A DNA stretch of 64,000 bases from Haplodiscus bocki (Eukaryota). The stretch lies in NCBI GenBank assembly GCA_965655095.1, contig OZ296650.1:133796001-133860000 (forward strand). The letters run 5' to 3'. Under the pieces are notes generated by a model that saw only the letters and a list, made by a program, of their open reading frames with translations, did no database searches and was not told the DNA's origin. This document shows positions 1 to 64,000 of the stretch, piece after piece. Every line of letters starts with the position of its first letter. The stretch's first letter is position 1. A program made the position numbers and the translations under genes.

Positions 1-22
1 CTTTCCCAACCAACATCGTGTT

Positions 23-3000
23 TTGAGTTGTACTTCCGTCGATGAGTACCTCCGCGAATCTAGAATGGCAGAAAATGGTGTTTTTGGAAGCTGTGTAGAA
101 ATATATTCATTTTGCCAAATCTTCAAAGTAGATGTTTTTTTGTACCATGTTCCATTCAAATCCTGGATGATTTATGAATGTTCCTCCAACGTAAATAGAA
201 AAGGAATTTTCATTCAACAAAACCGGAATGCAAATCACTTCGAGGTGATAACAGAGCTGGTTTCAATTGGTCCTGAAAGCTCCAGCTTATCGCAAGTTGC
301 ATCAATTAATCGCCCTCCTTCTCAATCAAGCGAAACTAATCATTGGAGTCAAGCCTTGCAGAACTGCGAAGGAACTGAAACTGAACCAGCTTCGAAAAAA
401 AGCAAAGTCAATTCTGATTACACCTGGGAAGAGCACCCTGACCCGCTCGCATTAAGTCTCTTCGCCAATTCTGTATCTACCAAAATGAAGAAACTTTCGG
501 CCTTGGAAACATTATCAACAAATTCAACGAACCTCCCAAAGAACGATTGTTCACAAATGCTGGAACCCCCATGTTTTGACTTTTCCCCAACAGATAGTGT
601 TTCAGGAAATATGCACACGAACGGCGAGTGCCCAAATTTGGGCGGATGTGACTGTTGCGCAAAATGCATGCGCCAGTCAACAGTTCTTTACCCTTTAAAG
701 TTGAAGTGGAAGAATAAATTTGATCTTAAAAACCGTGTGTTTGGAAACAAGCTAACGGAGCCCATTGTTGTTTTATGTAAGCTCTGTCTTCTCTATTGCA
801 CAACCGAAAGTTATGATTGGTACAATGCTTGGCCGTCTGTGTTTTTCAGCCTATTGAGTGATCAAGACATGCCAGTTAGAACCCAAATGGATATTTTGTC
901 TTTGTTACCTTGGGAATTGAGACAGCAGTGGATGACATCCATGCACTACTTTCCCCTGTGCGTTCAAAGATGTCTAAGTCGGAAACGGATTGCTGGGAAA
1001 TGTTCCGTTGATGGGACGCTTCGTTTGCGTCGTTTCCACGAACTCATGAAAACCTTGAAGCAGACTAACATTGCTCTTGCCCTGGACAATGAACCTTATC
1101 CCAACGTCCGCTGCCCATATGGGTGCTGGTGTTTCATTGAAGAATCAGGTTGGATACCCGCAAATCACTTCATCAATCTTTTTGAAAGAAACTTTACCTC
1201 GTTTCAGTCCTCCAGCTTCCTGCATCTAAGAGGAATTAGGTCCGACTTTTTGACACCATTTGTGTCCCTGCGCCAGTTCTTAGTAGCGACTACAGTGCGA
1301 GTTGATGAAAAAGCGGGACTCGTGGTTCAGGCTTGCTCCAGGCACTCAAGAGGCTCCAGTGTGCAGTACTTTCATCCGCCATCACATCCTTCGCTGGTGC
1401 GAACTACAGTGAATTATGAAGAACGTCTTAGTGCCATCGCACCCACATTGTCGTTCATCTCAAGCATAAAAGCCAACTTCGCCAGTCATACGTACCAATT
1501 GCTAAGAAGTGTTGGCTCTTACAGTGGAATGAGCACAGTCCGATTGAAGCGGAAAACGCGCTGGGATTTCACTAGTGACATTTTGTATCATGCTGAAGGC
1601 GTCGCTTGTCATTTCAGAGAAGACATCAAAACAATGATTCGTGAGTGGGTAAGACAGGGTAAAATCCTTGATGACGTAGCTTCGGGAATGCTGGATTATG
1701 TACCGGACAAAAAGAAAGTCAACAGTTGTTTGTCACAGGCCACTTCAATAGACTTACAAACATGCCTGAACCTCACGAAAATAGTGGAAATGAATGAAAA
1801 AGATTATCTCAACAATGTTGAGTCGTTGAATTGTTACACTCTCGTTCATGGGAATGATGATTACGGCTGCTCTCCACCTCCTCTGGAAAATAGAGTAAGC
1901 ATAGTATCGTGGATTGTGCAGGCTGCAGTTTGTGTTTCCCCAATACTTTGTCGATCCTTAGTGAACTCATCAAAATACAGTGTGACACTTAGGCCTTTGT
2001 TCACTTTACTCAGGAAAGTGTTGCTTGGCACCGCAAGAATGAATACAGCAAAAGTTTTATGGCTTGTTAGAAAATCCGAACAAGCAGTCTCAGCTGTCAT
2101 AGAACAAACTAACACTGATGACAAAACAGAGGGAACAACCGACTGTTGTTGTTTTGTAGGAGCAAGGTTTCTTTCAGAAATTTGTGACACCATTCAACAC
2201 GTTCCCTTAAACAAACGGAAGAATATCGGTTCAGCCACAACAGAGCAAGTTTCGTACAACATGACTCATGCCATTTTTACGAAAGGTTCCCCAAAAAATT
2301 TGCGGAACAAGGTGAAACCACCGTTAACCCTGATTATTTCCGACAATGAATTCGAATTGATTGCAGTTGGAACGAAGGATGGAAGCAGCAAGGGAGAACC
2401 GAGGTGGTTGGTTAGACATGGAGGGAGGTTTCAGGGGTTTTGGCTCATTGAGAAAAGTAAAAAATTTGCCACAAAAACAGAAGGCTCTCCGACTGATGCC
2501 CTGGAAACTTTCATTCGGGGTTATTGGACAATTGCAATTTATCAAAAGTCAAGAAATGTTGAATTGATTGATTTGAAGTGGAAATTTCTGAGCACTTTGA
2601 CAGGTCAGGGTATTTTTATTTGTGCACATCACACAATTCCTTTAACAAGAGGTTTCAGAAACAGTGGTTTCCAATGTAGATGTAATCGTGCATCGTTTTT
2701 GCGCTGCCCGCATTTGCAGTGCTACTCTTGCGTTTGCAAGCGTCTTTTCAATGAAGGTCTACAGCAGCAACACAGACGTATTTTAATTGATTCAGTACCG
2801 TTGGAGAAGTTAAATAAAACTAATTCCCCTTCTCTGGTATCGGAATCATCTTCGTCACGGGATTTTATTGAGCCCAACAGCATGCCTGCAAATGAACCAA
2901 TTCAACCAGATGCGGCAGCAGAAACGCTTGACATTGCATCAAGCAACAGTTCGTCCGTCAGTTATATTGTTCATCCGGAAACAAATGACGAAGAATTCGA

Positions 3001-6000
3001 AGATGACAACTTGAGAATAATGGCTACATTAAAAACCAACTCAGATGAAAAACTGATTTCCGTGGATCTTGAACGAAAAGAAGATGCCTTCAAACCACCG
3101 CTCCATATTCTTTTAAACTCACAATGCAATCTTCTTTATCGACGTAACGGGAATCCAATCAGCCTTTCTCTGAAAGAAAAACGTTTCCTGGAAAATATTT
3201 CAGCTGTTTCGACGTCTGCATTACCGCTCATTCAACCCGAAGCTCTTCTTTTTCCATCGATTTTTTGGTGTCAAGCTAGCAGCGGCAGTTTTCCAGGAGC
3301 AATACCAACGGCTTTATACAATTCATCCAAGTACAACAAACAGCTGGGTTTCGCCGGTTTGGATGACATGCTTCGAACTCGAATCAAGGACGGCTCTCTT
3401 TTGACATCTTGCAATCCTACTTATTTGCAGTATGTGTTTGATTGCCTCTTGAACATGCAGCTTCATAAAAGTGACATTAGGATAATACTAAATCGAGGAT
3501 GGCAAGAAGTTAATTCGGTTCCTCATAATTGCTCTTTTCTTTCGACTCAAACTTTCAAGTTTGATTGTGCCGAAAGTCGAAAAAATGTCTGCGAACTTGC
3601 GGCTTTGATTAGAGACAAAAATCCAACCTACTTTGTGACATACACTTGTAGTCAATCGACCCACCCGGGGATTCGCAAAATCTTTGAAGCACTGCATGAA
3701 ATGTATCCCGCAGAAACCACTCCAAAGGAAGTACTTGCAGCAGCAATTCAAGCTGAGCTCATGCCCATGCTCAGGTCTTGGTACCGCGCCTCTCAATATG
3801 TAATGGAATGGGTGAAAAATTCACCAGAAGAACCACTTGGTCCTGTGTCTCATATTTGGATGAGGTACGAATGGCAAGAAGAGACAGCTGGCTTTCCACA
3901 CTTGCATGCTATATTGTGCACACCAGAAGATAAATTTAGTGATGATGTACGATCTCGAGTTTGCTGTTCAAAACAAACGTTTTTGGGTGGCTTAGAAGTC
4001 AGTTGCCCCGAATTGAACGCAGTCGAACGTTTCCAACTGGGTGAACTTTACCAAAAGTATCAAACCCATAACTGTTCGAAAGGCCGTAAACGTTGCCATA
4101 AGAAGACAGACAGGCTGGACAAACCAATTTGTCGTGTACCTAAATATCCTCCTTCGAATTGTTTTTCTTTCAAGGAAATTCCTGTGAACTTTTCCTGCGA
4201 AACAATGGGACTTCTGCGAGAAATGGAACTGGCAGACATAGATGAAAACTCGCTATTCCCAAAAGTGAAAGATCCTTTAACGGCCGGAAAACATCATTAT
4301 CCCACTGTTTCTAACGAACATTATTCACCAACGAACGCTGCTCTTTTTGCTTTGACACAATCCAGCACCAATGTTCAAATATGTGACGACTACATGGCCC
4401 CCCGCTACGTTGCAAAATATGCAGCCGGCATTGAATCTCGAGCAGTTGCCAAAATTGTTGCTGGTGAAACAGAAAATAGTGTCAAAGTTTTAACAGAACC
4501 AATCGCACATGAAAAAATAGCTGGGGTACAGGCTTCGCAAAAGAAAATGAGAGGCGATGAAAAACAAAAATCTGTAACTGGTCGTGTGGTCAGCATAACA
4601 GAGTGTCTCTGGTGGTCCTTACAGCTTCCTTATGTCTGCACAAATGTCGATTTTGTTCACGTGCCAACTGTTCCCAAAGAAAATCGATCTGGAATTATCA
4701 CTGAAAAACGCTTTAGCAATAAAATTAAGTTGGGCGCCACGTTTATGGAAGGAATCCGAGTTCGGAAACACGTTTTACAACTTCCAAAGCACCGGCAGTT
4801 CACAAGAACACAAAGTTTTCTTCTTGCAGATGTTGAAAACAGCTCTATTTCGCCAGACAAAGTAACAGTTTTTGGACTCCGCCCACCTGAACTTTTGTTT
4901 GTCTCGAAGTTAAAAAATTACTACAGTTGGTTTGTTCGTTGTAAACCGCAAACAAAAAAATCCATCAGCAATCATGAAGTGTTCTTGAAGAGAAGCTTCC
5001 GCAGAAGTTGTTGGGTTGATGCATTGGGGTATTTGGTTAAACTACGCCCTTGTTCAGTGGACGCTTTCGTAAATTTCTGTCGTGCAAATGGTACCGATGG
5101 ACGGGATGGGATTCTGAAACGCGAAATGAGAATACACATTGTTCCGTTGCTTGTGACGAAAAAAGCATCACAATTTGTTGCTCACTGGAAGCAGTTGTCC
5201 GAAGAAGATGCCGTGGTTGTTTTCAGTAACGTTTTACCGAATAACCCAACTAAATTTCTACTACATGTGCTCTTGACTAATGGAGAATTTGACACAGAGA
5301 TGGACATTCTGAACGTGCAGTCTTTCAAAGAAGCTTTCACAACAGCTAAAATTATTCCAAGCTGTAACATAAACGCCAAGACCGTGCAAAATTTAACACG
5401 GAATTATTTGCTGAAACAGCTGCGTTTTGTACCTGGGTCCTCGAAACTAATTGACAAATACCTTTTAATGGCTCACAGTGTTCTTTCAGAGGCTCTGTTA
5501 GTAAACAGCCTTTATTTCGCTGCTGCGCTACCGCCTGTGCTGGACAGAAGTGTCATTGAAGAATACGAAGAATCACTAGCAGTGCAAATCAGTATGGAAA
5601 AATGCAAAATGGTAGCTTTTCTTCACACTTGTCAGAAACAATTACCTACTGAGCAGGCGATGCTAGATGCAACCATCACCGTCCCTTTACCTTGGAAACC
5701 AGTCATTCAGAAAAGCCCGGATCAATGTCGAAACTCTTATACGGAACAGAAGAGTGTATTAAACAAACTGTTGAGTTCCATCGACATTTATAAAGAAGGA
5801 CTTTGCAGTTTCATCAGGCATCAAATTGTCTTTGGACCTCCAGGAAGTGGGAAAACTTTCGTTGTGCTAAAATCGCTTGCATATGCTTTATGCCAAGGTC
5901 TCAACTGTGTAGTGACATCTTTGGCTGCTGAAAGATCTGCCGCTTTGGCTGGAAAACATCTGAATGCCCTCATCCCATTTCCAGTGGAAAAACACGCTTC

Positions 6001-7606
6001 TGCAGAATCGCTCTCGAGAACAGCCCTGTCCAACCTACAACGATCTCCTATTAAGAGCCGCTTTCTGCAAAATCTACACGTTCTTTTCGTGGAGGAATTG
6101 TCAATGATTTCTAGCGAACTTTGGGCTGCCACGGATTATGTGCTTCAGGTTATCACAGCAAATTATGTTCCATTCGGTGGGAAACTTGTTATTGCAACCG
6201 GAGATTTCTTCCAACTTCCTCCACCATCAGGATCTTGTTTGATGAGTTCTTCTTTTCCTCTCACAACGTTCACTTTTCTCAAACTGGAAAATTTCGTTCG
6301 CATGCAAAACAAAAATGGCCAAGAACTGTTGTCTTTGTTGTCAGCGACTCCAAAAACGGACGGCAATGCGAGGCGTATCTGGGAAATTATCGGTAAAGGT
6401 TGCAATTTTGTCCATTCATGGAAAGACGTGCCGAATGATAGAATTCGAATTTTTGCCACTCGACAAGCAGAACGTAAAGCAACTGAAGACAAAATAATCG
6501 ATGTTAAAAACAGCGGTACCCAATTTTATGAAAATGCGGCAATTGATGAAATGTGCGTTTCAAGCACTGACAACTGGACCGAGGCGTCGCCAAGTACATC
6601 AAAATTTCTCAACAAAAAGTGTCTTGAACCCCAGTCGTTGTTTCTGTACCCCGGAGCCATTTTACGACTAACAGTGAACATGCCAAATATATCCGCGTAT
6701 CAGGGTCAACTCTGTGTTCTGCTTTCTTTGGATACAATTGAGAATGGCTCTGTGACAATTGCTCTAGCACCAGCTGGTTGCCGAAGTATTCCACCGCTTG
6801 TTGTGATCAAAAACAAATGGCGTTGTGTTGTTATCGGCAAAGAAACTGGTGTTACCTACCGATTAAACCACAAAACGGTTTGCAGACGAATCCAGTTTCC
6901 ACTAAAATTATTTGTTGCGTCAACCATTCATAAGACAATGGGTGAAAGGCTTCCGATGGTCGCAACCCAAATAGTTGGATCGGAAGACTTCGCTTTGTGG
7001 CTTCCCGAACAACTCTATGTTGTAATGAGTCGAGTAAGAAGTCTGAATCAGGTGACTTTTGTTGGATCGAAGGAATCTAACAAACGAGCAGTCTTGGATT
7101 TAGTCTGCAAAAATTCGCAATGGGCTGAACTCACGAATGAAATTTTGACTAAAAGTTCCGCTGGTGACCCTACAATTGATCATGCAAGAGCATCTCCTTT
7201 TCCCCCTTCAATGAGAGAACTACCCGTTCAAAATGTGGGCTTCTGTTACTTGCTCCAAAGTGAACCACAGCAGCACCTTCTGTACATTGGCTCCACTATG
7301 TCGTTAGTGCGTCGTTTGCGAGAGCACAATGCAGGACTGGGTTCCTCCTTCACCAAGGTACAAAATCGTTTGCCCTGGATGGTTTGTGCTTATGTTACTG
7401 GTTTCAATTCGATTAATGCTTCAGAGAGAATCCGAGCATTCGAGAAGGAGTGGCTGAATGCGGCAACACACTACGTCAACGCAAAGAAGAAAAATGTGTC
7501 ACTTCCCACAGCTATCAATTTGGGGGAAATTTTCGCAAAAAATTGGCTATACAAAGAAGATGATTTGAAACTAGTAGTGTGCTGCAGGTCATCAACTGTG
7601 TCTTGA
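23..7606 (+). CDS. Helitron-like RepHel polyprotein: OTU (C-terminal part) - USP-like - HUH Rep - Pif1-like helicase - GIY-YIG nuclease; frame is open to the window edge, so the true start lies upstream
   Basis: OTU His motif NHFE. Rep motifs TYFVTYTC (3626-3649), YEWQEETAGFPHLH (3866-3907) and YVAKY (4406-4420). Walker A GPPGSGKT (5834-5857), VEELSM, GDFFQLPP, STIHKTMG, QLYVVMSRVR. C-terminal GFCYLL..YIGST..RRLREHN..PW..FEKEW. Bases 2-22 read FPNQHRV, matching unit C. Confidence 0.92.
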   Translation: MSCTSVDEYLRESRMAENGVFGSCVEIYSFCQIFKVDVFLYHVPFKSWMIYECSSNVNRKGIFIQQNRNANHFEVITELVSIGPESSSLSQVASINRPPSQSSETNHWSQALQNCEGTETEPASKKSKVNSDYTWEEHPDPLALSLFANSVSTKMKKLSALETLSTNSTNLPKNDCSQMLEPPCFDFSPTDSVSGNMHTNGECPNLGGCDCCAKCMRQSTVLYPLKLKWKNKFDLKNRVFGNKLTEPIVVLCKLCLLYCTTESYDWYNAWPSVFFSLLSDQDMPVRTQMDILSLLPWELRQQWMTSMHYFPLCVQRCLSRKRIAGKCSVDGTLRLRRFHELMKTLKQTNIALALDNEPYPNVRCPYGCWCFIEESGWIPANHFINLFERNFTSFQSSSFLHLRGIRSDFLTPFVSLRQFLVATTVRVDEKAGLVVQACSRHSRGSSVQYFHPPSHPSLVRTTVNYEERLSAIAPTLSFISSIKANFASHTYQLLRSVGSYSGMSTVRLKRKTRWDFTSDILYHAEGVACHFREDIKTMIREWVRQGKILDDVASGMLDYVPDKKKVNSCLSQATSIDLQTCLNLTKIVEMNEKDYLNNVESLNCYTLVHGNDDYGCSPPPLENRVSIVSWIVQAAVCVSPILCRSLVNSSKYSVTLRPLFTLLRKVLLGTARMNTAKVLWLVRKSEQAVSAVIEQTNTDDKTEGTTDCCCFVGARFLSEICDTIQHVPLNKRKNIGSATTEQVSYNMTHAIFTKGSPKNLRNKVKPPLTLIISDNEFELIAVGTKDGSSKGEPRWLVRHGGRFQGFWLIEKSKKFATKTEGSPTDALETFIRGYWTIAIYQKSRNVELIDLKWKFLSTLTGQGIFICAHHTIPLTRGFRNSGFQCRCNRASFLRCPHLQCYSCVCKRLFNEGLQQQHRRILIDSVPLEKLNKTNSPSLVSESSSSRDFIEPNSMPANEPIQPDAAAETLDIASSNSSSVSYIVHPETNDEEFEDDNLRIMATLKTNSDEKLISVDLERKEDAFKPPLHILLNSQCNLLYRRNGNPISLSLKEKRFLENISAVSTSALPLIQPEALLFPSIFWCQASSGSFPGAIPTALYNSSKYNKQLGFAGLDDMLRTRIKDGSLLTSCNPTYLQYVFDCLLNMQLHKSDIRIILNRGWQEVNSVPHNCSFLSTQTFKFDCAESRKNVCELAALIRDKNPTYFVTYTCSQSTHPGIRKIFEALHEMYPAETTPKEVLAAAIQAELMPMLRSWYRASQYVMEWVKNSPEEPLGPVSHIWMRYEWQEETAGFPHLHAILCTPEDKFSDDVRSRVCCSKQTFLGGLEVSCPELNAVERFQLGELYQKYQTHNCSKGRKRCHKKTDRLDKPICRVPKYPPSNCFSFKEIPVNFSCETMGLLREMELADIDENSLFPKVKDPLTAGKHHYPTVSNEHYSPTNAALFALTQSSTNVQICDDYMAPRYVAKYAAGIESRAVAKIVAGETENSVKVLTEPIAHEKIAGVQASQKKMRGDEKQKSVTGRVVSITECLWWSLQLPYVCTNVDFVHVPTVPKENRSGIITEKRFSNKIKLGATFMEGIRVRKHVLQLPKHRQFTRTQSFLLADVENSSISPDKVTVFGLRPPELLFVSKLKNYYSWFVRCKPQTKKSISNHEVFLKRSFRRSCWVDALGYLVKLRPCSVDAFVNFCRANGTDGRDGILKREMRIHIVPLLVTKKASQFVAHWKQLSEEDAVVVFSNVLPNNPTKFLLHVLLTNGEFDTEMDILNVQSFKEAFTTAKIIPSCNINAKTVQNLTRNYLLKQLRFVPGSSKLIDKYLLMAHSVLSEALLVNSLYFAAALPPVLDRSVIEEYEESLAVQISMEKCKMVAFLHTCQKQLPTEQAMLDATITVPLPWKPVIQKSPDQCRNSYTEQKSVLNKLLSSIDIYKEGLCSFIRHQIVFGPPGSGKTFVVLKSLAYALCQGLNCVVTSLAAERSAALAGKHLNALIPFPVEKHASAESLSRTALSNLQRSPIKSRFLQNLHVLFVEELSMISSELWAATDYVLQVITANYVPFGGKLVIATGDFFQLPPPSGSCLMSSSFPLTTFTFLKLENFVRMQNKNGQELLSLLSATPKTDGNARRIWEIIGKGCNFVHSWKDVPNDRIRIFATRQAERKATEDKIIDVKNSGTQFYENAAIDEMCVSSTDNWTEASPSTSKFLNKKCLEPQSLFLYPGAILRLTVNMPNISAYQGQLCVLLSLDTIENGSVTIALAPAGCRSIPPLVVIKNKWRCVVIGKETGVTYRLNHKTVCRRIQFPLKLFVASTIHKTMGERLPMVATQIVGSEDFALWLPEQLYVVMSRVRSLNQVTFVGSKESNKRAVLDLVCKNSQWAELTNEILTKSSAGDPTIDHARASPFPPSMRELPVQNVGFCYLLQSEPQQHLLYIGSTMSLVRRLREHNAGLGSSFTKVQNRLPWMVCAYVTGFNSINASERIRAFEKEWLNAATHYVNAKKKNVSLPTAINLGEIFAKNWLYKEDDLKLVVCCRSSTVS

Positions 7607-8183
7607 AAAGTCGTACTTTAGGAGAAAGCTGCCCAAAAACTTATGGATTAGTTTGAGATAATTGTTTTACTTGCACACAAACTTCCTTGCCTTGACAGCC
7701 ATACGCATCGACTGCATAGTGATGCAATGGTGAATTTCTCTTTATGTTATGCTGCAACCGCATCGGCTGCAGAGTGATGTACCAAGTAGCACGTGCAGCA
7801 ACATCAACCTTTTTGCTGGAAAATATAATGGCTCGACTGCATAGTGTTGCATTATCTATTTTGCAGTTGAGATGATTTGTTGCTAATCACTTGTCTGTGT
7901 CTGTTTAATTCATTAGTTTGATGGGATTGACTTTCACTGAACCTGATTTGATGGACTTTGATTTTGGAAGCACTAGAAAGAGTCAATTTAAAAAAGCGCC
8001 GTTAATTTTGGACAATAGAAATCAGCTAACTTTCAAGTTTTTTCGGGAAAAAAATATAATCATAGGTTAAATGACGAATTTTGACATTGTTGATTGAAGC
8101 ACTCTTGTTACTGTATCCCCGTATTCGGGGATGATACCTGAAGCTGCAGAAACCGACGTTTTTCACAGTGCTTCCAGATCATT

Positions 8184-8936
8184 ATGGCTCATTTGATCAT
8201 AACCGACTCTCTGGGCGTACAACTGGAAGGTGTGCTTGAAAATTTGGCAGTTAAAAGTTTTCCTGGCGCCAGAGCGGCGGACCGACGTGTAACGAGTTTC
8301 CTGGAAAATTTGCGGCGCCGCTTCCAATCCATTACAATTTTCATTGGAGGGAATGGCCTTTCCAATTGGGGCCGGCGTCCAGCTGAAAGTCCAGAACAGG
8401 TAAAGCTTAAGTGATGGTTCATGGGGTTACTGTTTGCAAAATCAAATTAGACGCTAGTAAAATTTGGAACGTTTTTGTGTATTGTTAAACCCTTTATTGA
8501 AGTACGTTTAGTAAAAATCTAGGAAAACGTTGTTTTCAATAGTAAGTCTTTCTACTGGTACTTTAACTGGTGCTACTTGCAAACTATAATTGAACCGTAA
8601 CTTTGTGTTTTTAATATCTCAACAGTACTTCATTTGCTTTTGTTGTTTTATTATTAGGTGTTCCATGATATCTTGAACCTTGTGAGAATTGCCGAGAGAA
8701 AATGCGACAAAGTATACTGCCTGGGCTTAGTAATGCGAAGCCGACCGTGCTTCCTTGCAGTGAAAGAAATAAACCGAATGCTGCGAACATCCATTGGACA
8801 CTACACTTACGTTTCCGTGTCATCTAAGATGTCATCTGAAAGAAATCTTAAAGACGGAGTGCATCTGTCTCAGCACGGCGTGACGAACATCCTGTGGATT
8901 ATAAAAAGACGGATTTTAGGTAACAAATGTGTGTAG
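8184..8936 (+). CDS. SGNH/GDSL-type hydrolase, 2 exons (8184-8399, 8658-8936), 164 aa
   Basis: Joining at CAG|GTAAAG (8400) and TTATTAG|GTG (8657) is in frame and assembles all four SGNH blocks: ITDS, FPGA, IGGN, DGVHL. Confidence 0.82.
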
Positions 8937-10378
8937 CAGTACATTAAGATGTTGAAAAACAGTATTGATTCCAGTAATTTGCGGTTGATGTCAACTTTCC
9001 AGCAATTGAATGTTTCTAGCTTTAAACTCTTTGGAATTTACCTATAGAAGGTTTACGTTTTTTCCATAAACTTCCATTCTAACACCAATGTCGTTTAGGA
9101 TACTCAATCAGGAGACTCTCCCATCGCAAAAACCGCTACGTCCACTGGAAGTGGTGAAGATCCGGCCCTGTGTTGTTGTAGGCTTCATTTGGACATTTCT
9201 GGAAAATGGAATTACAATCTTGGTCGTTGCACCTATGTTTCGAATACTCTTGGTAGTTTTTTCATGATGACACAATTTTGAAACTTTTTTTGGTGGTACC
9301 ATTAAAAACAAACAAAGGTGCTTTTTTGGTTTCCAATAATCTTGGCCAATTGACGCCGCTAACAGTGTTTTAATTTTGTTTTCGTGTCCTCTTCGATTTG
9401 TAATTTGTCAGTGATAAAATTGTAAAAAAGCTCGACCGCATGGTGGCCTCTACTTCTTTGAAGTTTTGAATTTTTTTTGTTCCACACACCTTGCATTTTG
9501 GCGTACATTACAACATATTTATTATTTTAAACTTTGTCTTCATGCCTCATTCAATTTAAAGTTGGTTTGTGATGACGTTGTAAGGAGTTCAACCGCATGG
9601 TGATCTGTACCTCTTTGAATTTTTGATGCTTCGTTGTCATTGGAACATTTTTTTAATGGTCGCCGTCCGCTATTAGTCGTCACAATTCCTTCATGTTTTC
9701 GCTGAAATAGTGTACTCCATAGTTACATTGTTTGTTAAAAACTTTTGGTAGTTTAAAATTTCGAAAGTGATCAACTAACCTCGGCCATACTGTTACAAGG
9801 ATTGTTCATATTATTTTGAATAAAGTTTTCTTTTGAAATGTTTGTTCTTATATTCGCAAAAAACGTTATAGCAAACATTGTGCAGCTTTGAGCTCGTATT
9901 AAACTTCAGTTGTCGAACATCTGCAATGAAGATATAATTTATAATCCTTAACTTTCGACAAGTTTTGTAGACAGGAAAAAAACCGATGTAATAACGATGT
10001 ATTTGAATGCATTGCTCACCATTTTTTTTCTTTTGCCTTGAGTGTTACTGATCGATAAAGCGTGATGCGTTGAACAGTAAGATAACTGTAAATGTAACAT
10101 AACATTTCGATGAAATAAACTTAATGATAAAGAAGATTTGAGAAATGTGAATAATTGAGAAACTTGTCATGCTTTTTTGAAAAACAGGTTGCTTTACTTG
10201 AAGCAATAGCGCTAATTCACTGGATTAAATGCTTGAAACCAAAATTACTTGCCTGTTGACTTCATTGAACCTTATAGGAAAATGCGTTCACAGAATCTTT
10301 AAAAAAGGAAAAAGCATGGTTTTGAATGTTCCAATTGTTCAATTCTCAGGCAGCTTCAACCACGTTTGATTTCAGACT

Positions 10379-11389
10379 ATGACAACTCAAGTGAACACCT
10401 CCCAAGTAACAGCACCAAATTTTTTGCGACGAAGCGAAAATACATTCGTCAGAGGTATCGTTCTAGTAATTAAGAAATACGACAAACCTTTGCAGTTGTT
10501 TAGACCGCAAAATATCAAAAACAAGAGAGGTGCCCTCGATACCAGCTATGATCGATTAGTCATACTAGGCGAGATCAATTCAAAAGAATGCTTTGCTGTG
10601 ATTGCGGAGTCTGCACAGAAAAGCTATTTTTTGTTCGGGGACACTCTGTTAACAGTAGGGTCAATTGTGGACGTAAAAGAACCTGTGTTCTCGAACTCTT
10701 GTCTCGGCAATGACCGCAGTAATCCAATTTTTCATGTCTTTCTTCCTTTGGAAGTCGTGGTTAACAATATTCCATTGTTGCCAATTCCCATAGATCTCCA
10801 CCCATCAACGACAGCAATGTTTCACTTTTGCTTGCCAAACAGACCCCTCACCTTCTTACAAGCAGGTGCTGTAGCTCCAACTTGCTCAGGCTTCATGTGT
10901 GACAGACGAGAAAAACGAATTGACTCTGTATGCCCCTGTATACAGAAATCTCCTGTTTCAGCTTGGGTAATGTGCGCCCGAATTGTCAGTCGTGACATCG
11001 AAAATGAAGACGAAGATTCCCTCACGGGAGAAATGATACAAAGTCTTAACCTGACAAAACTGTTTTGCAGCGAAGCAATTATTAGAAGTTCATATGCATC
11101 AATCGATTCGCAACAACTGCGGATTGCTGTTAACCAGGTGTCCCAATTTGTAAATGAGAATGGTGGTTGGCAGGTATGTGGATTTTACAAAAGTGGATCC
11201 ACAGACGAAAATCTTGCACAAAACGTACAACGTGTCCGCATTTGCAAAATTACGCCTGCCGTTGAAGTGCCTTTTAACTTGAAATACAACATTGTGCCAT
11301 GCAACGCCAATATTGGCAATGAGCCCCCAGCTTTGCAACATGCGAATACTAACGTCGGTGCTCCTAACAATCCGAACAACGTACGATAG
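10379..11389 (+). CDS. Conserved element protein (~330 aa), putative OB-fold/RPA-like ssDNA-binding protein with Cys cluster
   Basis: Alignable end to end with 13750-14748, 40560-41570, 45789-46781 and 60746-61738 (RGIVL, LQLFRPQ, YDR, LTVGSIV, PTCSGxxCDRR..CxC, NGGW, LQHAN). The OB-fold call is inferred from the strand pattern only. Confidence 0.75.
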   Translation: MTTQVNTSQVTAPNFLRRSENTFVRGIVLVIKKYDKPLQLFRPQNIKNKRGALDTSYDRLVILGEINSKECFAVIAESAQKSYFLFGDTLLTVGSIVDVKEPVFSNSCLGNDRSNPIFHVFLPLEVVVNNIPLLPIPIDLHPSTTAMFHFCLPNRPLTFLQAGAVAPTCSGFMCDRREKRIDSVCPCIQKSPVSAWVMCARIVSRDIENEDEDSLTGEMIQSLNLTKLFCSEAIIRSSYASIDSQQLRIAVNQVSQFVNENGGWQVCGFYKSGSTDENLAQNVQRVRICKITPAVEVPFNLKYNIVPCNANIGNEPPALQHANTNVGAPNNPNNVR

Positions 11390-12418
11390 CTGATCTAGAC
11401 TTACTCCTCAGATGACCGTTCTTTCTCCACCGCATGAACTGCTTGCTGGTTTTCAAAACCAATCTCTCCTTTCGCAATCGACCGCAAGGTGGTTGCTGAA
11501 AAAAACATGCACAAATTAACAAGTTTCGGAAAAAAAGTCAACTGATAAAGTTGTCCTCGTTCTTTCATACCACAATTTGTTCTCCTCCTTTTCAATCTTG
11601 AAACCTATGCTTCAATTTTCTTGTTAATGATAAAGTTTAACTTTCCAGTACTTATCAGTACCCAAAGGTTAATTGTTGGTTTTTTGGAACTGTAAACACT
11701 AATGTCAAATTACAAATTAGTTGTTGTTGAACAATGGAAATTAGTTTGCAACTGCCGACGACTTGTCTCTGTAAACCTACGTTTTTCAGTAGCTTAGAAC
11801 ATTGTGCTAATTCGTGTGGCTTTTGAGTGTGGTTTATTGGTTCGTGTAGAAGTTGTGAACTTTTTATGTTATGCAATTAACTTTTTCTTGTTATGTTAAA
11901 CATTACTATCCGTTCATGACCGAACGTTTTGAACTTTGAAACGCTGGCTTGCTCTTCTATCGGTCGAAGTGCACGCTCTCAGTTCGTTGCTTGACGTTTG
12001 ATACAGTGTTGTAATTTTCGCTAACAGAAGAATGGGATCAAACTTTCATACGAAATTTTAGGGAAATTTTTTTCTGAAGTCCATACAGGTTCATTTGGTT
12101 CATTCGGGTTGTTTTCACAAAGTAACAGCTGGGAACCTACTGCCTACAAATTGACAACATTGATGCGAAACTTTTTGAGAAAGTTAAAACACTTTCGCTG
12201 GTCAAATTTCAAAAGTATTCGTTCGGACAAAAATTTTAGTTTTCCTTCCCAGAAACTCATCAAACTTGAAGTTGTTTGTTAAAGGAACAGTTGCTCTCCG
12301 AGAATTGCGGGCAAAAATTCCTGCCGACGTTTCACCATACGCCTGTTTAAGTGTTATATTCAAATTCTACAGAAAAAATTGATTTTTTTTCTGATTTTTG
12401 TTTTTTTTCCAAAAAATT

Positions 12419-12994
12419 CGTCATAACCGTCATTTTTTTCGGCAAAGTGGCCGAAACTTTTTCATCTTCGGAAAATTGCCTTTGAAGTTATGGAGTCGAT
12501 TTCATACTGGAGCCACTCCAGAGGGCAAACTATGCACTTCAATGTGGGAGCTATGACGAAATGGTCGATTTTCGGCATTTTTTTCCAAATTTGATCCGTC
12601 ATATCTCAACACCTATAACGAGTTGGTAGAAAATTTTTTGCATGTGTGTAGCCCTTAGTTATACTGCTTCACACGAAAAGTTTCGGCCAAATGCATGTGG
12701 TTCCTTGCAGGGCTGTCGGTGAAAAACTGCAAAATGAGGCCAAAAAACAGAATCATCTCGTCATAATTCCCCAACCATTTTTGCTAGAATGATCTAACTT
12801 GCACCATTGTTCTTAGAATTGAAAGTTATGCCCGCATGCAAAGTTTGATCAAAATCGTATGGGTGGGAGCTGAGATCGCTATTTTCCTATACCGTATTTG
12901 CATAGAGTTATTTCTTATATTTTAACGCGAGGCAAAGGGGCCCCTCCCCCGCCTCGCCAGGACCTATGAGGGGCGTAATCCCGTGACCACCCAG
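12419..12994 (+). repeat. Subterminal module R1 (A/C-type) with CGTCAT cluster, hairpin 12927-12957 and terminal CCAG
   Basis: Closely similar to 27890-28466 and 42626-43205. Confidence 0.88.
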
Positions 12995-13001
12995 CGGAGG
13001 C
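12987..13001 (+). other. Unit junction core J1, CCACCCAGCGGAGGC
   Basis: One mismatch to the core found at 26352, 27411, 28459, 44628 and 59585. Confidence 0.8.
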
Positions 13002-25740: not shown

Positions 25741-26359
25741 CGTCATGACCGTCATTTTTTCGTTTTAATCGTCATTTTTTCGTCATAACCGTCATTTTTA
25801 TCGTCATTCTGAGCGAAAAAAAATTGTCGTCGAGAAAAAATCTTTCAATCGGTGTGAATTGTTCCGCTGTCCGGCAGCCCTAGATGTCAATGTTGATACT
25901 TCGACAAGGGAGAAATGACGGAATGACCATTTCTTTCAAATTTTCTATCAGTTTCATCCGTCATATCTCCACTTTTATGACGAGTTGGCGGAAAATTTTT
26001 TGCATGCGGATAACTCACAGTCAACATGCTTCACACACACAAAGCTAGCCCAATGCGTATGGTTAGTTGTGGAGATTGGGCCAAAAAACTTCGGTAAGGG
26101 GCCAAAAATGACGATCATTCCGTCATAACTCCTCCCGCAATGAATCAATCATGACGGGACCTACAACAAAATTCTTAGAATTAAAAGTTATGGCCACATG
26201 CAAAGTTTGAACAAAATCTAATGGTTGGAACGCGAGATCGCCTTATTTAGCCCCCCCTACGGACGGTTACTATTTGCTACGCACTATATTTTAAGCTCGG
26301 CGAACGGGTCCCTTCCCGGCCTCGCAGATTGTTAGTGGGGTATCACCCTGACCACCCAG
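25741..26359 (+). repeat. Subterminal module R2 (B-type), about 12 CGTCAT/ATGACG copies, two hairpins, terminal CCAG
   Basis: Nearly identical to 26801-27418 and more distantly alignable to R1, R4, R5 and R7. Confidence 0.88.
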
Positions 26360-27418
26360 TGGAGGCTAGGGTACCAATTACCAGAGGAGGCCTAACTGTA
26401 GGTACATTTTTCCCTGAATACAATTTGTTCAAGTTTAATATTTTTTGATCCATGAGTATTGATGTTTACATTTTTGCTATTGAGTCTTCTACTGTTTTGT
26501 GTTCCCCTCAGCAAAGAATATTACATGACTCCAAATGTTTTTATTGTGGTCTGAGCCCGTTGTTCATCCGATTAGCTACGCGCTAATCTCCCGAACAACG
26601 GGAAATATCAAATTTGAAAAGAAAATCCGTCTTTGAGAAAAGCTGTGGTTCACAAAAAAAGACAACTCCAATGAGTTATGAAAGTCGTTAGAAAATCAAA
26701 AAACGTTTGTGTACATCACTGCATCACATGTAACTATTTTCATTGTTTTCCACACGTTGAAACATAAAGTTTTATGAAGTTTCTTTTTTTTTGAAAAATT
26801 CGTCATACCCGTCATTTTTTCTTTGTAACGGTCATGTTTTCGTCATATCCGTCATTCTTTTCGTCATTCGGAGCAAAAATTTTTGTCGTCGGGAAAATTT
26901 GTTTCAATTGGTGTAAGTTATTCCGCTGTCCGGCAGCCCTAGATGTCAATGTTGATACTTCGAAAAAGGAGAAATGACGGAATGACCATTTCTTTCAAAC
27001 TTTCTATCAGTTTCATCCGTCATATCTCCACTTTTATGACGAGTTGGCAGAAAATTTTTTGCATGCGGATAACCCACACTCGAAATACTTCACACACAAA
27101 AAGCTAGCCAAATGCGTATGGTTACTTGTGGAGATTGGGCCAAAAAATCTCGGAACTGGGCCAAAAATGACGATCATTCCGTCATAACTCCTCGCCCAAT
27201 GAATCAATCATGACGGGACCTACATCAAAATTCTTAGATTTAAAAGTTATGGCCACATACAAAGTTTGACCAAAATCTAATGGTTGGAACGCGAGATCGC
27301 CATATTTAGCCCCCCCTACGGACGGATACAATTTGCTACGCACTATATTTTAAGCTCGGCGAACGGGTCCCTTCCCGGCCTCGCAGATTGTTAGTGGGGT
27401 ACCACCCTGACCACCCAG
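26360..27418 (+). mobile_element. Short non-coding unit S1 (1,059 bp), non-autonomous, B-type ends
   Basis: Left end TGGAGGCTAGGGTACCAATTACCAG resembles B's left end; right module 26801-27418 resembles R2. Flanked by cores at 26352 and 27411. Confidence 0.8.
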
Positions 27419-57968: not shown

Positions 57969-58999
57969 TTTCTGAAAATGAGATTCGTCAAAACTCTGTA
58001 CACCCATCAACACTCAGTGGCGGCGCCTACATCTATAAAACTCAGTCAATGAAGGCTTTGAAACAGCCACATGCGTTACAGAAAAATCTTCTATCGAAAG
58101 GAACTTCAAAAACAGTTGGATCATTTGAATTCAAAAGATTCACTGCATTGAATATTTGAAGTTCACCAGTTGAATTTTTAACTGTCTCTTCAGTGACTTT
58201 TCGTTTTTAATGCCGAAAATACCATGCTTGTGTGATTTCAGCAAGACTTGCAGTACTTGAAAAAATGATTAGTTAAATACGATTCAAATTCAAAACAATG
58301 AGGACTGTTAACGTTGTACACCAAACAAAACAAACTGCTGAGTAAGTATACTCTCAAAATATTCCTTGTCGAATGCCAAAGTGGTGCTTGTTGAACGCCA
58401 ACCATAAACTGACCAAAAAAATTAACAATTACATAACACACTCCAACTTACAAGGCATGAAAGAGGTTCAACTCTCGTAATGCAAACGTGGAAAGTTCCA
58501 ACACTGCTGATTTCTACAAAAAAACATAACAAGGAAAACGAAAGAACCTCATAGATGCTCAGAACAATAATATAACAAACTTAAAATTTCTGGCAAACAA
58601 TTGAAATGGAATGCAAAACTTATTGCCAAAACTTTTATTTTTATTTTTCAAAATGAATGACACGTAATGGAAGCATCTATTGCATTCTACAACCAACAAA
58701 GAGCCCTGATCCAAGATATAATTTATGTATGCCATTATACTTGATGAGAAAAAATGTAGGATTATAAAATATAACTTACATAAGTAACGCCTAACTAGAT
58801 TAAATTTGAGTTTAGCTGAAAAAACTGTGTCATTTGAGACAAAATACTGTCAAAGTGTCAACGACCACTTGTGTAGAAGCTGCGAAACATTGTTAGCCGC
58901 ATTTTACGCGCAAAACGATCAATTCCAGCGTTTTTAGGCGCTTTTTACGCGCAAAGCGATCCTTTCCCGGGAAATTTTTTTTTTTCTCACAAAAATATC

Positions 59000-59592
59000 C
59001 GTCATTTCCGTCATTTTTTTCCCGTCATATCCGTCATTTTTTTTCGGCATTTCGATCGAAAATTTCTGGTTAACCGAAATCAATTGCCGGTTCAGTTTTG
59101 GCATCCTTAGCGAAGGCTAGCATACGAGAAAAAGTTGGTTTTGGCGATCAAAAATGACGGAATGACGCATTTTTTGCAAAAATTTACAAATTCATCAGCG
59201 CCTATCTCCCGAACAAAAAAAGCTGGGCCAAAAATTTTTGGCATGCAAATTGTTCAAATCATTTGTGCCTCACACACAAAATTTGGGCCAATTGTATCGG
59301 GTAGATGTGGAACTAAAGCGATGAGAAGTCAAAATCGGGACAAAAAACACGATCATTCCGTCATAACTCATCACGTTGTGAATGGAAAAAGTTTTTTCCC
59401 TCCTCCCCTTTCTCACCTCGCCATTTGAGGACCGCATGCAAATTATGAATAAATTCTATCGGGTAGGACCCGAGATCGGCTTCCCAGACCCCTAGTGCAC
59501 CTAGATGAAAATTTATCGACTAATATTTAACCTCGGCAACGGGACCCTACCCGGCCTCGGATTCTAAAAAGGTTACATCCCTGACCACCCAG
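59000..59592 (+). repeat. Subterminal module R7 (D-type)
   Basis: CCGTCAT cluster; motifs AAAATTTTTGGCATG, CACACACAAAATTT and CATGCAAA..GAGATCG; hairpin GGC-AA-CGGG-ACCCTA-CCCG-GCC; TGACCACCCAG. Confidence 0.8.
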
Positions 59593-60745
59593 TGGAGGCA
59601 AAGGTACCGTTCGCTAGAGAGGCCCAGTGAATGTTGGATAGGTATCTGTGGACACCAACTGAAATGGAGTTTTGTCATAAAAGTAAAAAAAATTAACTCT
59701 CAATCTCAACAGAACAGAAGCTAAAACCGTTCAAGAAATGAACAACAATAGCCAAAACGGAAAAATAGATCCGACTTTATCAAAGAAAAACCCCTGAGTA
59801 AAAGAACTTTTTCCAACTCCTATTGAAAAAACCAGGTCCAAAAATAACAATTAAATTTTGAGAAGAAACATAAAACTCAAAACAGCTGTTTATGAAAAAT
59901 TTCAAAGCTCCTACACGTTTTCCCATTTATAAATGTTCCTAAAAGATCGATATGTCTACATAGCAAAACGAGGCTCACACACTGCAAAATTCGCTCAACC
60001 TTCTTTACTGTCTTATTTTAAACGAGAATTTCATCTCCGTTTAATCACTGCGACATTTTGAACAAAGACAACATAGACTTCTGTGAGCGTACCACTGACT
60101 TGGGACATCGAAATGACTTCACGGCTCATGCAAACTATAAATCGTTGCTATTCACAGTGAATCTCTTTTAGAACTTTGAACACTTTCAAAGTATTTTCAT
60201 TTGTTCCTCCAACTTTATGAGTAAACTATTTGAACACGAGGCAAATCGCGAACCAAAAGTTCCTATCTAATTTGAGTACGTTAAATTTATCAATATCTTG
60301 ACAAATTGGAGCAAATATATCTTCTAATACTAATGATAGCATCATTATTGAGAGGCCACTGACTTAAGAAAATTACTTCCAAAGTGCTTTACTAACATTG
60401 AAAAGCGTAGTGAAAATTTCATAAAACCTTCAACGAGGATTATTGAAGTAAATCGAACTACTTTACAGAGAATAATGCAGGGTACTGCCATAACGAAACA
60501 AGATTTATTTAGGTGAGAGAAAAACAGTTGTTTGTTTCATTGTAAAGTTTGTGGAAAGAAGGTTTAAATGTAAAAGAGACCATGTAAAGTTGAGTTGCTA
60601 AGGCAACTGCGTTGAATTCATCGACGGCACTACAGAATAACAATAGATGTGAAACTTTCAAAAAGGAACATCCTTCTATATGTTCATTCTCATTCGACTT
60701 CAAAAAGCACATATCCGTAGGGGATTTTGAAAAATCCATAACAAA

Positions 60746-61738
60746 TCAATCGTGCTGAACATTCGGGTTGGCATGCTGTAGTGGAGGTGGCCGATTGGGC
60801 GGTTGCCGAGCATTACCAATAGTGTACTTCAAGTTGTTCGGGATTACCGAAGCTGGCATAAGACGACAAATTCGCACATGATGAACAGCTTGAGTAATTG
60901 ACTCATCACTGACACTGGATTTGCTGTAGCCAGATATTCTCCAACCACCATTATCGTTGACATATGCTGTCACCCTAGTCATTGATTCACGCAACAGATT
61001 CAATTCAACCGAGCTAGCTGGCAATCGAAGAACGTCATTGCTGCAAAAGAACGAGGCCAACTGATGACTTTGGGTCATGTCTCCGCTCAGGGGATCGTCC
61101 GCTTCTTCTTCCACGTCCCTAGAAATGATGCGTGCGGCGACAGTCCACGACGAAACTGAATTCTTGTGTAAGCAAGCGCACACCGTTTCATTTCTGAGAA
61201 TACGACGGTCGCACATACTTCCAGAACACGTAGGTGATATAATGTTTCCATGCAAAAACAACAAATTTCTACTGTTCAGAGTGTAATGGAACATTGCGGG
61301 CGTGCTCGGTAGGGAAATAATTGGAATTGGCGGAAAATCCTCATTGCTTACGTTATTGATAACAACGATCGCCTGATGAGTTTCAATAATCGGATTATTT
61401 TTGTCATTCCCTAAACACGTGTTCGAATATATAGGCTCTGTAACCTCTACAACAGAACCAACAGTCAGATGACGATCCGAAAACAGTTTAGCAGACTTCT
61501 GCGCGGAAACTGAGATGACGACAAAACAATCTTTACTATTCCATTGACCAATAATAGCCATTCTGTCATATGTCCCTTCAGGAAGTGGTCGTTTCAATTT
61601 TGTAGCTTGAGGTCTAAACAACTGAAGTGGCCGATCACTTTTTTTCAGAACCAAAACTATCCCCCTTATTACAGTGTTCTGGCTGTTGCGCAGGAAACCT
61701 TCGCCTGTAACTTCAGCAACAGTTACTTGTCTATTCAT
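60746..61738 (-). CDS. Conserved element protein (330 aa), identical to 45789-46781
   Basis: Identical translation in the ORF track. Confidence 0.75.
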   Translation of the reverse strand: MNRQVTVAEVTGEGFLRNSQNTVIRGIVLVLKKSDRPLQLFRPQATKLKRPLPEGTYDRMAIIGQWNSKDCFVVISVSAQKSAKLFSDRHLTVGSVVEVTEPIYSNTCLGNDKNNPIIETHQAIVVINNVSNEDFPPIPIISLPSTPAMFHYTLNSRNLLFLHGNIISPTCSGSMCDRRILRNETVCACLHKNSVSSWTVAARIISRDVEEEADDPLSGDMTQSHQLASFFCSNDVLRLPASSVELNLLRESMTRVTAYVNDNGGWRISGYSKSSVSDESITQAVHHVRICRLMPASVIPNNLKYTIGNARQPPNRPPPLQHANPNVQHD

Positions 61739-62402
61739 TTCTTAAAAAATGCAAAAGGATGTGTTTCAAACGAGGAAGTACACGATAAAAAACACAAGTC
61801 AAGATTTGCAGTCTGATTTCTCTCAAACGGAAAAACGCCCAATGAACAAAGAAAAATTTTTGATGAAAGAAAACTTTAGAAAATCCGTTTTTTTATTAAA
61901 GCCTAGCAACTCTTCAGTCCCGTCTATGGTACACTTTGTCTGGAATCAACTGAATCTGCAGTCATTTATCGGGTGTGTCCTCAAAACAGTTTTCCACTCC
62001 AAGTCAAAAATTGGTCGCATACCGAAAACATATAAATTGAAACACAGATAGTACATTAAACTGAATTTCCTCTGAACTATTTCTATTTCCAAAAACAAAA
62101 CAATTTACAACAGATTCCAGTAAAAAAACCTGCATGCCAAAAGGATATAAACAAAATGCCAAAAAAGCGTTCAGCTTCAAATAACATCATCAAATGTAAA
62201 ATCATAGTTCAACTAAATGAATGCAATATTGCCAATTCATTTTTTACATTTAAAAACCATATGGCAGCACAAATAGTGCAATTAAACAATAACACCAAAA
62301 CATGACAGAAATGACCGCATTACAAATATTCACGCGGTGTTAAAACACCGACGGACTTCCTAATCATCAAGTTATCTTCATGGAGCTTGCGGTAATTGAT
62401 GC

Positions 62403-63335
62403 CTATGCCGATTCGTGAAACTCACATCTGTTTCTTTTGACCTGCAAGAAACAGATAATCTTGAAATAGTTCGCAGAGGACTTGCTTGTTTTCACGATGA
62501 ATCGTGAAAACAAGCAAGTGCTGTTATTGAAGCATAAAAAACTCTCCAGTTAACTCTTCCAACTCCGGATTTGGTTACCAAAAACTTTAAACTATTGACA
62601 CTGAGTAAAATGAATATGTTATGCACGAAATTTGTATCTACTCACTTGGTTCGGATGTTAAATGCATCAACCGTGTAATCACTAACGTTCCGGTTTTCTT
62701 TCAAAAATTGTGGCAAAAATATGTTGCTGCTTATCTTCGAAATTGTCAATAAAACAGAAACCAAAAACTAAAACACTAACTTTGTTTCGGAGATTATTGC
62801 GTCTATTGCGGCACCGACGCAAAGTCAAATCCTGCAAACCATTGTTCAACAGTGTTCTGGATAGCATATGATTCTCTAACAAGCTATTCAGGTGCAGATC
62901 GTTACTTTCATCAAGTAAAAGTTTGTACCGTTTTGATAGAATCGATTTCATTTTCAAAAAAATAATTCCTGTTGGACAATTTTCCAAGAGCTCGTTTAAA
63001 TTATGCGCTCCTGATCGTGGTAAGTAGGAAAAAGCCACGACATTGAATTTTCTCAAGTACGCCAGTTTACTGAAAAAAGCCTCAGGACTCATTGCCGGAT
63101 TCTTCTTGCTTGACAAAGAGTTATTGACAGCATCATGCCAAATGATAACCTTTCTTCCATTAGTGTTGCAGGAATTCGATTGAAGAAGATAACAAATGTT
63201 TTTTTCTGGTTGGTAGTTATTTAGCGAAGCACCAGAAATTGCACAAAATTGTGACTTGAAAGGATCAAAGAGGTAAGGTTTCTCCTGAGCTGCCCAATAA
63301 AGGGAAGAGGCCGCCAAAACAAAATATTCAGACAT
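62403..63335 (-). CDS. Divergent SGNH-like hydrolase, copy of the unit D gene (exons 63335-62781, 62441-62403)
   Basis: Exon 1 translation identical to unit D; same donor and acceptor. Confidence 0.62.
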
Positions 63336-64000
63336 AACAACCGGAAACCGAAAGACAATGTATTATGAAAACAAACAAACGAACGAAACATACTTTATAT
63401 TGTTTACTTTGCAATTAGAAAAACCTACTCAAACTCCAGAATCTCCTTTCATTCATGTCATTTGCTTATTAGAACAAAAACGAAGTCAAACAAAAATTCA
63501 CAACGGCCACACAGCTACAGAGTCGTCAATACGGTCAAAAATCAGAAATGTTCTTTGAGGAAAGGAAATTTTATAAAAAATACAATAGCCACATACCCGA
63601 AGAATGAAAATCTCACTCAAACAACTCGATATGCACGAAATAAGAGCCCCTCTTTAATCGCTGCAAAGAAGTACATAGTGGTGAAACACTTCAATTCACA
63701 AAAGTAACGATAATAAAAAAGCTTCTCATAAAACAAATGATAGAGCGTTTAATGACTTGAAAGAAAAAGTGTTCACAGCTTCCGTAACAAGGAATATGGA
63801 ATGGATTTGAAAGGTGCCGCGCTACAAATGAACTCCGCTGCTATCTCTTTATGTTTCCAGGCCAGTTTGTAGAACATGGGTTGCTGGACAACCAACTCAT
63901 ATACGTTCATCTAACAAACAACATTCTAATTGAGAACTTGCGTCGGCGGTTGCTGAGCAACCAGCAAAACAAAACATGAAAGCTAAATTGCCTCCGTCAG

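Follow-up and report, generated by a model that had tools for sequence, protein, structure and literature searches.

The window analysed here, a 64,000-nucleotide (nt) stretch of Haplodiscus bocki DNA, is filled from end to end by eight Helitron-like rolling-circle transposons of several diverged families (units A, B, S1, S2, C, X2, D and E; Table 1), some of which encode a Rep-helicase fusion (RepHel) and all of which stand head to tail in one direction. Unit borders were defined with a right-end profile and self-BLAST, and both gave the spacer-free tiling that a first-pass annotation of the window had described, with the last right-end bases falling at the unit ends listed in Table 1. The 15-nt core CCACCCAGYGGAGGC is present six times, always on the + strand, and an exact-match search placed it where that annotation had put it, at the first base of each joint in Table 1 except C/X2. 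A search allowing up to two mismatches returned the same six sites; 0.05 would be expected by chance, and a count of six was not attained in any of 100 shuffles. When all seven joints in the window were aligned, about 150 nt upstream of the core were found to be conserved, and the 40 nt or so downstream were family-specific yet related. Self-BLAST indicated that units A and C are 72-88% identical and units B and D about 65%. Units D and E are 99% identical (98.98%) from the core onward and their upstream flanks are unlike, so that, as had been noted, identity between them begins exactly at the core.

Two earlier descriptions of the joints hold in part. The joint between C and X2 had been read as a variant of the core; it is a true joint with an ordinary right end (...GAACACC), but the sequence that follows belongs to another left-end family (TAGGGAAAG), which recurs at further loci. 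Likewise, a single 15-bp core had been proposed for all units. The complete 15-mer is kept in families A-D, but only CCACC/YAG is common to all families. The base after ...CCACC (Y) follows the right-hand unit (CAGTGG..., TAGCGCTGG... or TAGGGAAAG...): it is C when the next unit begins CAGTGGAGGC or CAGCGGAGGC, and T before TAGCGCTGGAGGC (X family) or TAG... (X2 family), whichever unit precedes. The exchange point therefore lies at or within the invariant CCACC, immediately before Y. No spacer is present at any of 73 joints in the window and at other loci. The earlier claim of co-oriented termini without target duplication thus stands for polarity and for the lack of a spacer, but a duplication consisting solely of the CCACC bases would formally be compatible with the joints. 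Within the core, CCAC can pair with GTGG across the joint, an observation to which we give little weight.

The right ends are the more extensive of the two conserved regions. Right-end modules of about 600-630 nt are homologous across families, between which they are 65-68% identical; at this end S1 shares 91% identity with B, and S2 shares 83-87% with A and C. Each right-end type has a small family-specific hairpin that finishes 6-9 nt before the joint, with a stem of 3-6 bp (GGGGT/ACCCT, TCTCT/AGAGA, CCTC/GAGG, GGGGG/CTCCC), the 3-bp cases being weak, and a conserved GGGNCCCTNCCC-GCCTC block lies farther upstream. Doublets of the form CGTCAT(N3-4)CGTCAT are located approximately 575/565 nt before the joint in A, B, C, D, S1 and S2, with a single GTCAT at about -395 and at about -233, and 30 of the 38 occurrences of CGTCAT in the window fall inside the 6 kb of right-end modules. 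The doublets keep conserved distances from the joint and are possibly iteron-like, putative Rep-binding sites. Folding of whole ends gave energies no better than those of shuffles (z of -2.1 to +1.4), which leaves the local hairpins of each family as the informative structures. In a search for terminal inverted repeats, the first 40 nt matched the subterminal right end exactly over 5-7 nt at most, the level obtained with shuffles; gapped or mismatched repeats were not searched. An Rfam scan of the window matched no family, so the core and right-end module do not correspond to a known host RNA gene.

The long open reading frames (ORFs) of the units were found with Pfam to carry an OTU protease, the C-terminal half of Helitron_like_N, a PIF1 helicase and a C-terminal GIY-YIG nuclease. 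Scores for Helitron_like_N were 27-33 bits at a cut-off of 28.9. Both Rep motifs are intact in A, B, C and D, the HUH motif as PH(L/I/V)HA and the two-tyrosine motif YxxKY as RY(V/L)AKYAAG. The PIF1 helicase is fused C-terminal to Rep (Pfam E values of 1e-9 to 1e-14), its matches in the PDB being PIF1 helicases and, weakly, the Helraiser helicase, and the best match of the GIY-YIG part among solved structures was SLX1 (E = 7e-9). RepHel of A shares 40% identity with its counterparts in B and D, which are 51% identical to each other. The polyprotein is fragmented in C and in the D copy of the window; other D copies have a single ORF of 2778 amino acids (aa). Pfam scans of ORFs of at least 200 aa revealed OTU, Rep, PIF1/AAA and GIY-YIG domains only and no tyrosine-recombinase integrase; neither Exo_endo_phos (AP endonuclease), in whose place GIY-YIG stands, nor DUF6570 was matched, including at E of 1 or below in the first 1200 residues of A and the first 1100 of B.

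Smaller genes accompany RepHel. An ORF of about 330 aa is present in A, B, C and D and is better conserved than RepHel (50-69% identity among the full-length copies of A, B and D). It has no Pfam match; its neighbours in a protein language model (POT1, RPA, MEIOB and CTC1) suggest, as a lead only, an OB-fold protein that may bind single-stranded DNA. A 217-235-aa ORF of B and D (54% identity) may be an SGNH/GDSL-like hydrolase, a weak lead taken from its Atlas neighbours. The gene order is OTU-RepHel-GIY-YIG, SGNH-like ORF (in B and D) and OB-like ORF. The termini of all units share one direction, but the genes do not: the + strand carries RepHel in A and C, the - strand in B and D. A protein search returned 45 clusters of 2,000-2,850 aa, many of them annotated as PIF1 plus GIY-YIG and nearly all from ENA assemblies.

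Table 1 Units, joints, right-end modules and ORFs of the 64,000-nt window. OB-like and SGNH-like denote tentative assignments.
Feature	Position	Strand	Description
Unit A	1..12991	+	Autonomous; cut by window start; right-end profile match
Unit B	12992-26356	+	Autonomous; 13,365 bp; ends of same family as S1
Unit S1	26357-27415	+	Non-autonomous; 1,059 bp; B-type left and right ends
Unit S2	27416-28463	+	Non-autonomous; 1,048 bp; A/C-type ends
Unit C	28464-43202	+	A-type relative, decayed; 14,739 bp
Unit X2	43203-44632	+	Non-autonomous; 1,430 bp; left end TAGGGAAAG..., right end ...GAGACGGCCACC
Unit D	44633-59589	+	Autonomous type; 14,957 bp
Unit E	59590..64000	+	Second D-type copy; cut by window end
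Joint A/B	12987..13001	+	CCACC then CAGCGGAGGC; also in contig ctg67541
Joint B/S1	26352..26366	+	CCACCCAGYGGAGGC
Joint S1/S2	27411-27425	+	Same reading as B/S1
Joint S2/C	28459-28473	+	Same reading as B/S1
Joint C/X2	43198-43205	+	ACACC, then TAG
Joint X2/D	44628-44642	+	Same reading as B/S1
Joint D/E	59585-59599	+	Same reading as B/S1
Right-end module, A	12360-12991		
Right-end module, B	25724-26356		
Right-end module, S1	26784-27415		
Right-end module, S2	27832-28463		
Right-end module, C	42557-43202		
Right-end module, D	58936-59589		
ORF, unit A	23-7606	+	RepHel polyprotein; Helitron_like_N, PIF1, GIY-YIG by Pfam
ORF, unit A	10379-11389	+	OB-like, 336 aa
ORF, unit B	13750-14748	-	OB-like
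ORF, unit B	15703-16410	-	235 aa (SGNH-like)
ORF, unit B	17072-23656	-	RepHel
ORF, unit B	23711-25252	-	OTU-bearing
ORF, unit C	31638-32945	+	Polyprotein piece (OTU)
ORF, unit C	32824-37992	+	Polyprotein piece (Rep)
ORF, unit C	37999-39708	+	Polyprotein piece (PIF1, GIY-YIG)
ORF, unit C	40560-41351	+	OB-like
ORF, unit D	45789-46781	-	OB-like
ORF, unit D	47688-48341	-	SGNH-like
ORF, unit D	49683-56006	-	Broken polyprotein
ORF, unit D	55903-56928	-	Broken polyprotein
ORF, unit D	56858-57691	-	Broken polyprotein

To place the window among other copies, we obtained 22 loci from the ENA assembly ERZ26859043 by exact-protein look-ups, which together with the window amount to about 490 kb. With the loci oriented as the window, the right-end profile identified 65 joints in the window and 21 loci and none on the opposite strand, and 8 further joints, again of one polarity, are present at L022, which lies on a 1.55-Mb contig (ctg88854). 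Joints of the same form were found on about 20 contigs. All 42 complete units carry left and right ends of the same family, and none has mixed ends, which extends to other loci the agreement of end types recognized in the window for B with S1 and for A/C with S2. Every core at a left end on the array strand (60 of 60) is preceded by a right end. Neither host-like DNA nor a solitary copy was found in the 490 kb. After the two loci that duplicate the window had been left out, 18 of 62 joints were seen to link different families.

The neighbours of nearly identical copies vary. The D-type copies (n = 12) are 98.7-99.98% identical over 6 kb, the unit in front of them being X, X2, S1, S2, S3, A-type or D-type. 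The A-type copies are approximately 99-99.8% identical in nine of ten loci and stand before at least five kinds of unit, namely B, D, several variants of the A/C type, S2 and S2', with S2 units standing next at L014, L015, L018 and L020. In the window and on other contigs, the ends examined in 12 copies of D type and 11 of A type all abut a further element's end at one and the same point, which is the reverse of the mostly solitary copies with unrelated flanks that would have spoken against the arrangement first described. Unit E is 98.98% identical to its neighbour D and about 99.8% identical to copies on other contigs; given that E is closer to distant copies than to D, the D/E pair is not the product of one concatemer event. 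The 8-mer TGACCACC, a half-site located inside each D copy, never serves as a joint.

Short derivatives share ends and arrays with autonomous elements, as had been claimed for the window, and one derivative of about 1.0-1.4 kb is found per autonomous lineage: A/C is paired with S2, B with S1, D with S3, and a fourth lineage, F, with X. Lineage F was identified at L022 as an autonomous element of 12,882 bp that is embedded in an X array and whose ends equal those of the 1,436-bp X units. Its genes are on the - strand, as in B and D, and its RepHel shares 34% identity with that of A. On the basis of these shared ends, X looks like a non-autonomous derivative of F that has been amplified into satellite-like runs. 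Homotypic runs include X arrays of at least six units, four S1 units in a row at L002 and D/D pairs, and X2-related units are present at L001 and L015.

At L005 (12109-12215, or 8779-8885 of the reverse complement) one D copy, which stands directly after a D-type right end, begins with an internal CCCAGTG that lies 35 nt inward of the normal left end; either a nick at a look-alike site or a microhomology deletion would fit this start. No array edge was seen at any locus, the next step along the 1.55-Mb contig leading to another element. Contig ctg88097 carries two arrays of opposite polarity, L012 (forward) and L013 (reversed), about 112 kb apart, so that the interval must contain an array edge or an inversion.

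One contig of the second assembly, ctg67541, is 100% identical to positions 379-27521 of the window (27 kb) and therefore derives from the same individual. It carries A, B, S1 and the start of S2, inside which it breaks, and its coverage is 51.9x, compared with 51.6x for the 1.55-Mb contig. Single-copy coverage of this kind argues against a collapsed or mis-joined repeat, although the data are not independent of the window. Joints also occur in other samples. Two contigs of the Joint Genome Institute (JGI) metagenome Ga0126343 contain a right end, the core and an A/C-type left end, one of which, on the downstream side of the joint, shares only 77% identity with the window, and contigs from two 2017 'coral metagenome' runs span a right end and the core. 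Contigs from these runs also match the 5' part of unit B (24501-25080) at about 96.5% (20 differences in 577 nt), which indicates a close relative of family B in those samples. The read data consisted of short Logan contigs that break in repeats and do not span units; small 'skips' in them were rejected as presence/absence joints, the sides being shorter than 30 nt. A metagenome scan with an 18-mer gave nine matches, of which two were true joints; the other seven, in GC-rich, bacterial-like DNA, were rejected as arising by chance. No such joint was present in L023, a relative from another run with 35% identity.

We consider it probable that Rep nicks at the joint and joins a copy of a unit into another joint. 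The sequence features that suggest such joint-targeting are the integrity of units, their single polarity, a fixed switch point between families that are 65-68% identical, and young copies with combinatorial neighbours. Also in its favour are the excess of the core over chance, the intact Rep motifs with PIF1 and GIY-YIG domains, the family-specific hairpins, the unused half-site, the lack of host-like DNA, the pairing of F with the X satellites and the joints in other samples. On this reading the window is one section of a very large, polarized array. Each unit would extend from its YAG... left end to the right-end module of about 600 nt, then the hairpin and ...CCACC. RepHel would most likely nick one strand at CCACC/YAG, a sequence that exists solely at the meeting of a right and a left end, whether in a circle or an array; the enzyme would then peel off or copy one unit, and the reverse reaction would join that unit into the same sequence at another joint. 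With a joint common to A/C, B, D, F and the short derivatives, any unit might enter between any two others, and, because all lineages keep the same joint, mixed head-to-tail arrays without spacers would result. The SLX1-like GIY-YIG nuclease may process the second strand or a branched intermediate, and the OB-fold protein may coat the single strand. Site-specific insertion at the joint of related elements, which the first-pass annotation had put forward, is supported by the presence of approximately 99% identical copies beside varied families at the same point; that Rep performs it, together with the position and strand of the nick, a circular or single-stranded intermediate and placement by insertion rather than by some other Rep-mediated exchange, is what we infer.

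Several observations weigh against joint-targeting or limit its reach. Joints within a superfamily make up 44 of the 62, and concatemer formation or local duplication and re-insertion therefore contributes as well. Neither a de novo insertion, nor an empty/filled allele pair at one orthologous site, nor a circle junction was observed, and the second assembly comes from the same individual as the window. The exchange point is not resolvable inside the five conserved bases CCACC. Because the loci contained no array edge and no founding insertion in host DNA, two-sidedness of the target is not established.

This last point bears on a one-sided form of targeting, in which the enzyme would read only the resident right end (the hairpin and ...GACCACC) and attach the copy 3' to it, in the manner of IS91 or IS608, or in which replication would overrun the terminator and switch template; in that case the left-end part of the core would simply reflect how arriving units, in a conserved manner, begin. 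Conservation of about 150-600 nt of the right ends across families far exceeds that of the left ends, the left ends of X and X2 are used without the full core, and word depth peaks over right ends, all of which speak for a one-sided mechanism. Against it, no left-end core on the array strand lacks a right end before it. Such a mechanism should also leave, at the downstream edge of each array, a right end followed by non-element DNA; none was seen in the 490 kb, yet no edge was sampled. We regard one-sided targeting as unlikely.

Another explanation dispenses with joint-specific insertion and views the arrays as old tandem repeats, either rolling-circle concatemers or satellites, that were reshuffled by unequal crossing-over or gene conversion in the right-end modules. 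Tandem Helitron concatemers are documented (PMC4067079; Xiong 2016, cited in PMC11934779), and the homotypic runs of X, S1 and D described above are common here. Recombination between modules that are only 65-68% identical, in elements whose RepHel proteins are 34-51% identical, would hardly switch families always at the same few bases, yet this is what the joints exhibit; nor would it readily spare all 42 complete units from mixed ends or set copies of about 99% identity between unrelated neighbours. Reshuffling as the sole origin of the arrays thus appears very improbable. Mis-joining of repeats at a common k-mer during assembly is scarcely credible: the conserved ends are highly repeated and ctg67541 ends within S2, but a second assembler reproduced A/B/S1/S2 at single-copy depth, the same joints recur on other contigs, in the JGI metagenome and in the 2017 coral runs, and end families agree within units.

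Joint-targeting would set these elements apart from known relatives. Helitrons normally insert at AT or TT. The elements are Helitron-like by their enzyme but lack canonical end and target features. They share with Helitron-like elements in the broad sense an HUH and YxxKY Rep, a fused PIF1 helicase, a 3' hairpin, and the lack of terminal inverted repeats and of a spacer. The TC...CTRR ends and A/T host target of canonical Helitrons (HLE1) are not found, the ends being YAG...CCACC and the examined ends meeting other elements; nor, in the exact-match search, are the short (8-15 bp) asymmetric or subterminal inverted repeats of HLE2, or its T/T host target, the joints reading CCACC/YAG. The resemblance to HLE2 lies in a giant RepHel (HUH, two-tyrosine, PIF1) with OTU upstream of Rep and an extra C-terminal nuclease, an accessory OB/RPA-like gene, a 3' subterminal hairpin, short non-autonomous partners in greater number than the autonomous copies, and RepHel in either orientation in some families (PMC3627910, PMC11417382, PMC4067079). 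The extra nuclease is an AP endonuclease in Helentron, whereas it is of the SLX1-like GIY-YIG type here, without a DUF6570 match and with YAG...CCACC ends. 'Capture' of a GIY-YIG domain has been reported once, in an HLE2 family of the moss Sphagnum (HELIANO, PMC11417382).

Head-to-tail Helitrons as such are not new. Perfect end-to-start junctions without a host base have been described, one case in maize, of two unrelated Helitrons, being explained by consecutive insertion (PMC2267711); single perfect pairs formed by different Helitrons are known in maize and bats (PMC2267711, PMC4067079), and tandem arrays have been ascribed to terminator bypass (PMC4067079, PMC5876387). Such pairs and concatemers, in maize, bats, silkworm and plant centromeres, are occasional, with the elements otherwise at AT, whereas here the arrangement is the only one seen, extends over hundreds of kilobases and involves a long conserved joint and at least four lineages whose enzymes are 34-51% identical. 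Helitrons of a divergent clade in Paramecium target the telomere repeat, and they too combine integration that is presumed to be sequence-specific with an absolute bias in orientation, with ORFs whose direction depends on the element, and with numerous derivatives and satellites that lack ORFs (PMC13085455). Their target is a repeat of the host, in contrast to the elements' own end-to-end joint, and the domain sets of the enzymes are unlike.

The nearest functional analogues are target choice of the IS608/IS91 type and integron arrays, both of them analogies rather than memberships. The bacterial IS200/IS605 and IS91/ISCR elements cleave and join single strands with an HUH enzyme, insert in an oriented manner beside a sequence like their own end, have subterminal hairpins and generate no target duplication. 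They lack a fused helicase or GIY-YIG domain and have targets of 4-5 nt, and mixed multi-family arrays of them are not known. The comparison is one of mechanism and draws partly on PMC10288648. Integron cassettes are alike in outcome only: unrelated cassettes lie in one direction, each bounded by a recombination site that is intact in the excised circle. Integrons depend on a tyrosine recombinase and attI/attC, whereas no such enzyme is encoded here and the cassettes are themselves transposons. The literature searched on Helitron site specificity, on tandem or head-to-tail arrays and on GIY-YIG or SLX1 nucleases in Helitrons contained no description of several lineages targeting their own joint. 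Nor did it describe a RepHel-SLX1-type nuclease fusion as a lineage, and within that literature the fusion is an undescribed domain architecture.

On balance we lean, with some reserve, towards a broader view, in which an HUH-helicase-GIY-YIG enzyme integrates at a self-generated site of at least 8 to approximately 17 nt plus a hairpin, a site common to lineages whose enzymes are only 34-51% identical; this would amount to an integron-like cassette system in an animal genome and to a direct route from transposons to satellite-like DNA. Helitron-like elements are regarded as choosing a dinucleotide target only. If joint-targeting is true, it would be a rare instance of sequence-specific integration by a eukaryotic HUH enzyme, at a long sequence made of the elements' own joined ends, and an oligonucleotide of the joint together with the Rep domain would provide a defined substrate for studying how Helitron-type cleavage and joining choose their site. 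It would also account for the stacking of unrelated elements in arrays hundreds of kilobases long and for the origin of 1-1.4-kb 'satellites' from transposons, and it would confine the elements to a safe haven in which host genes are spared.

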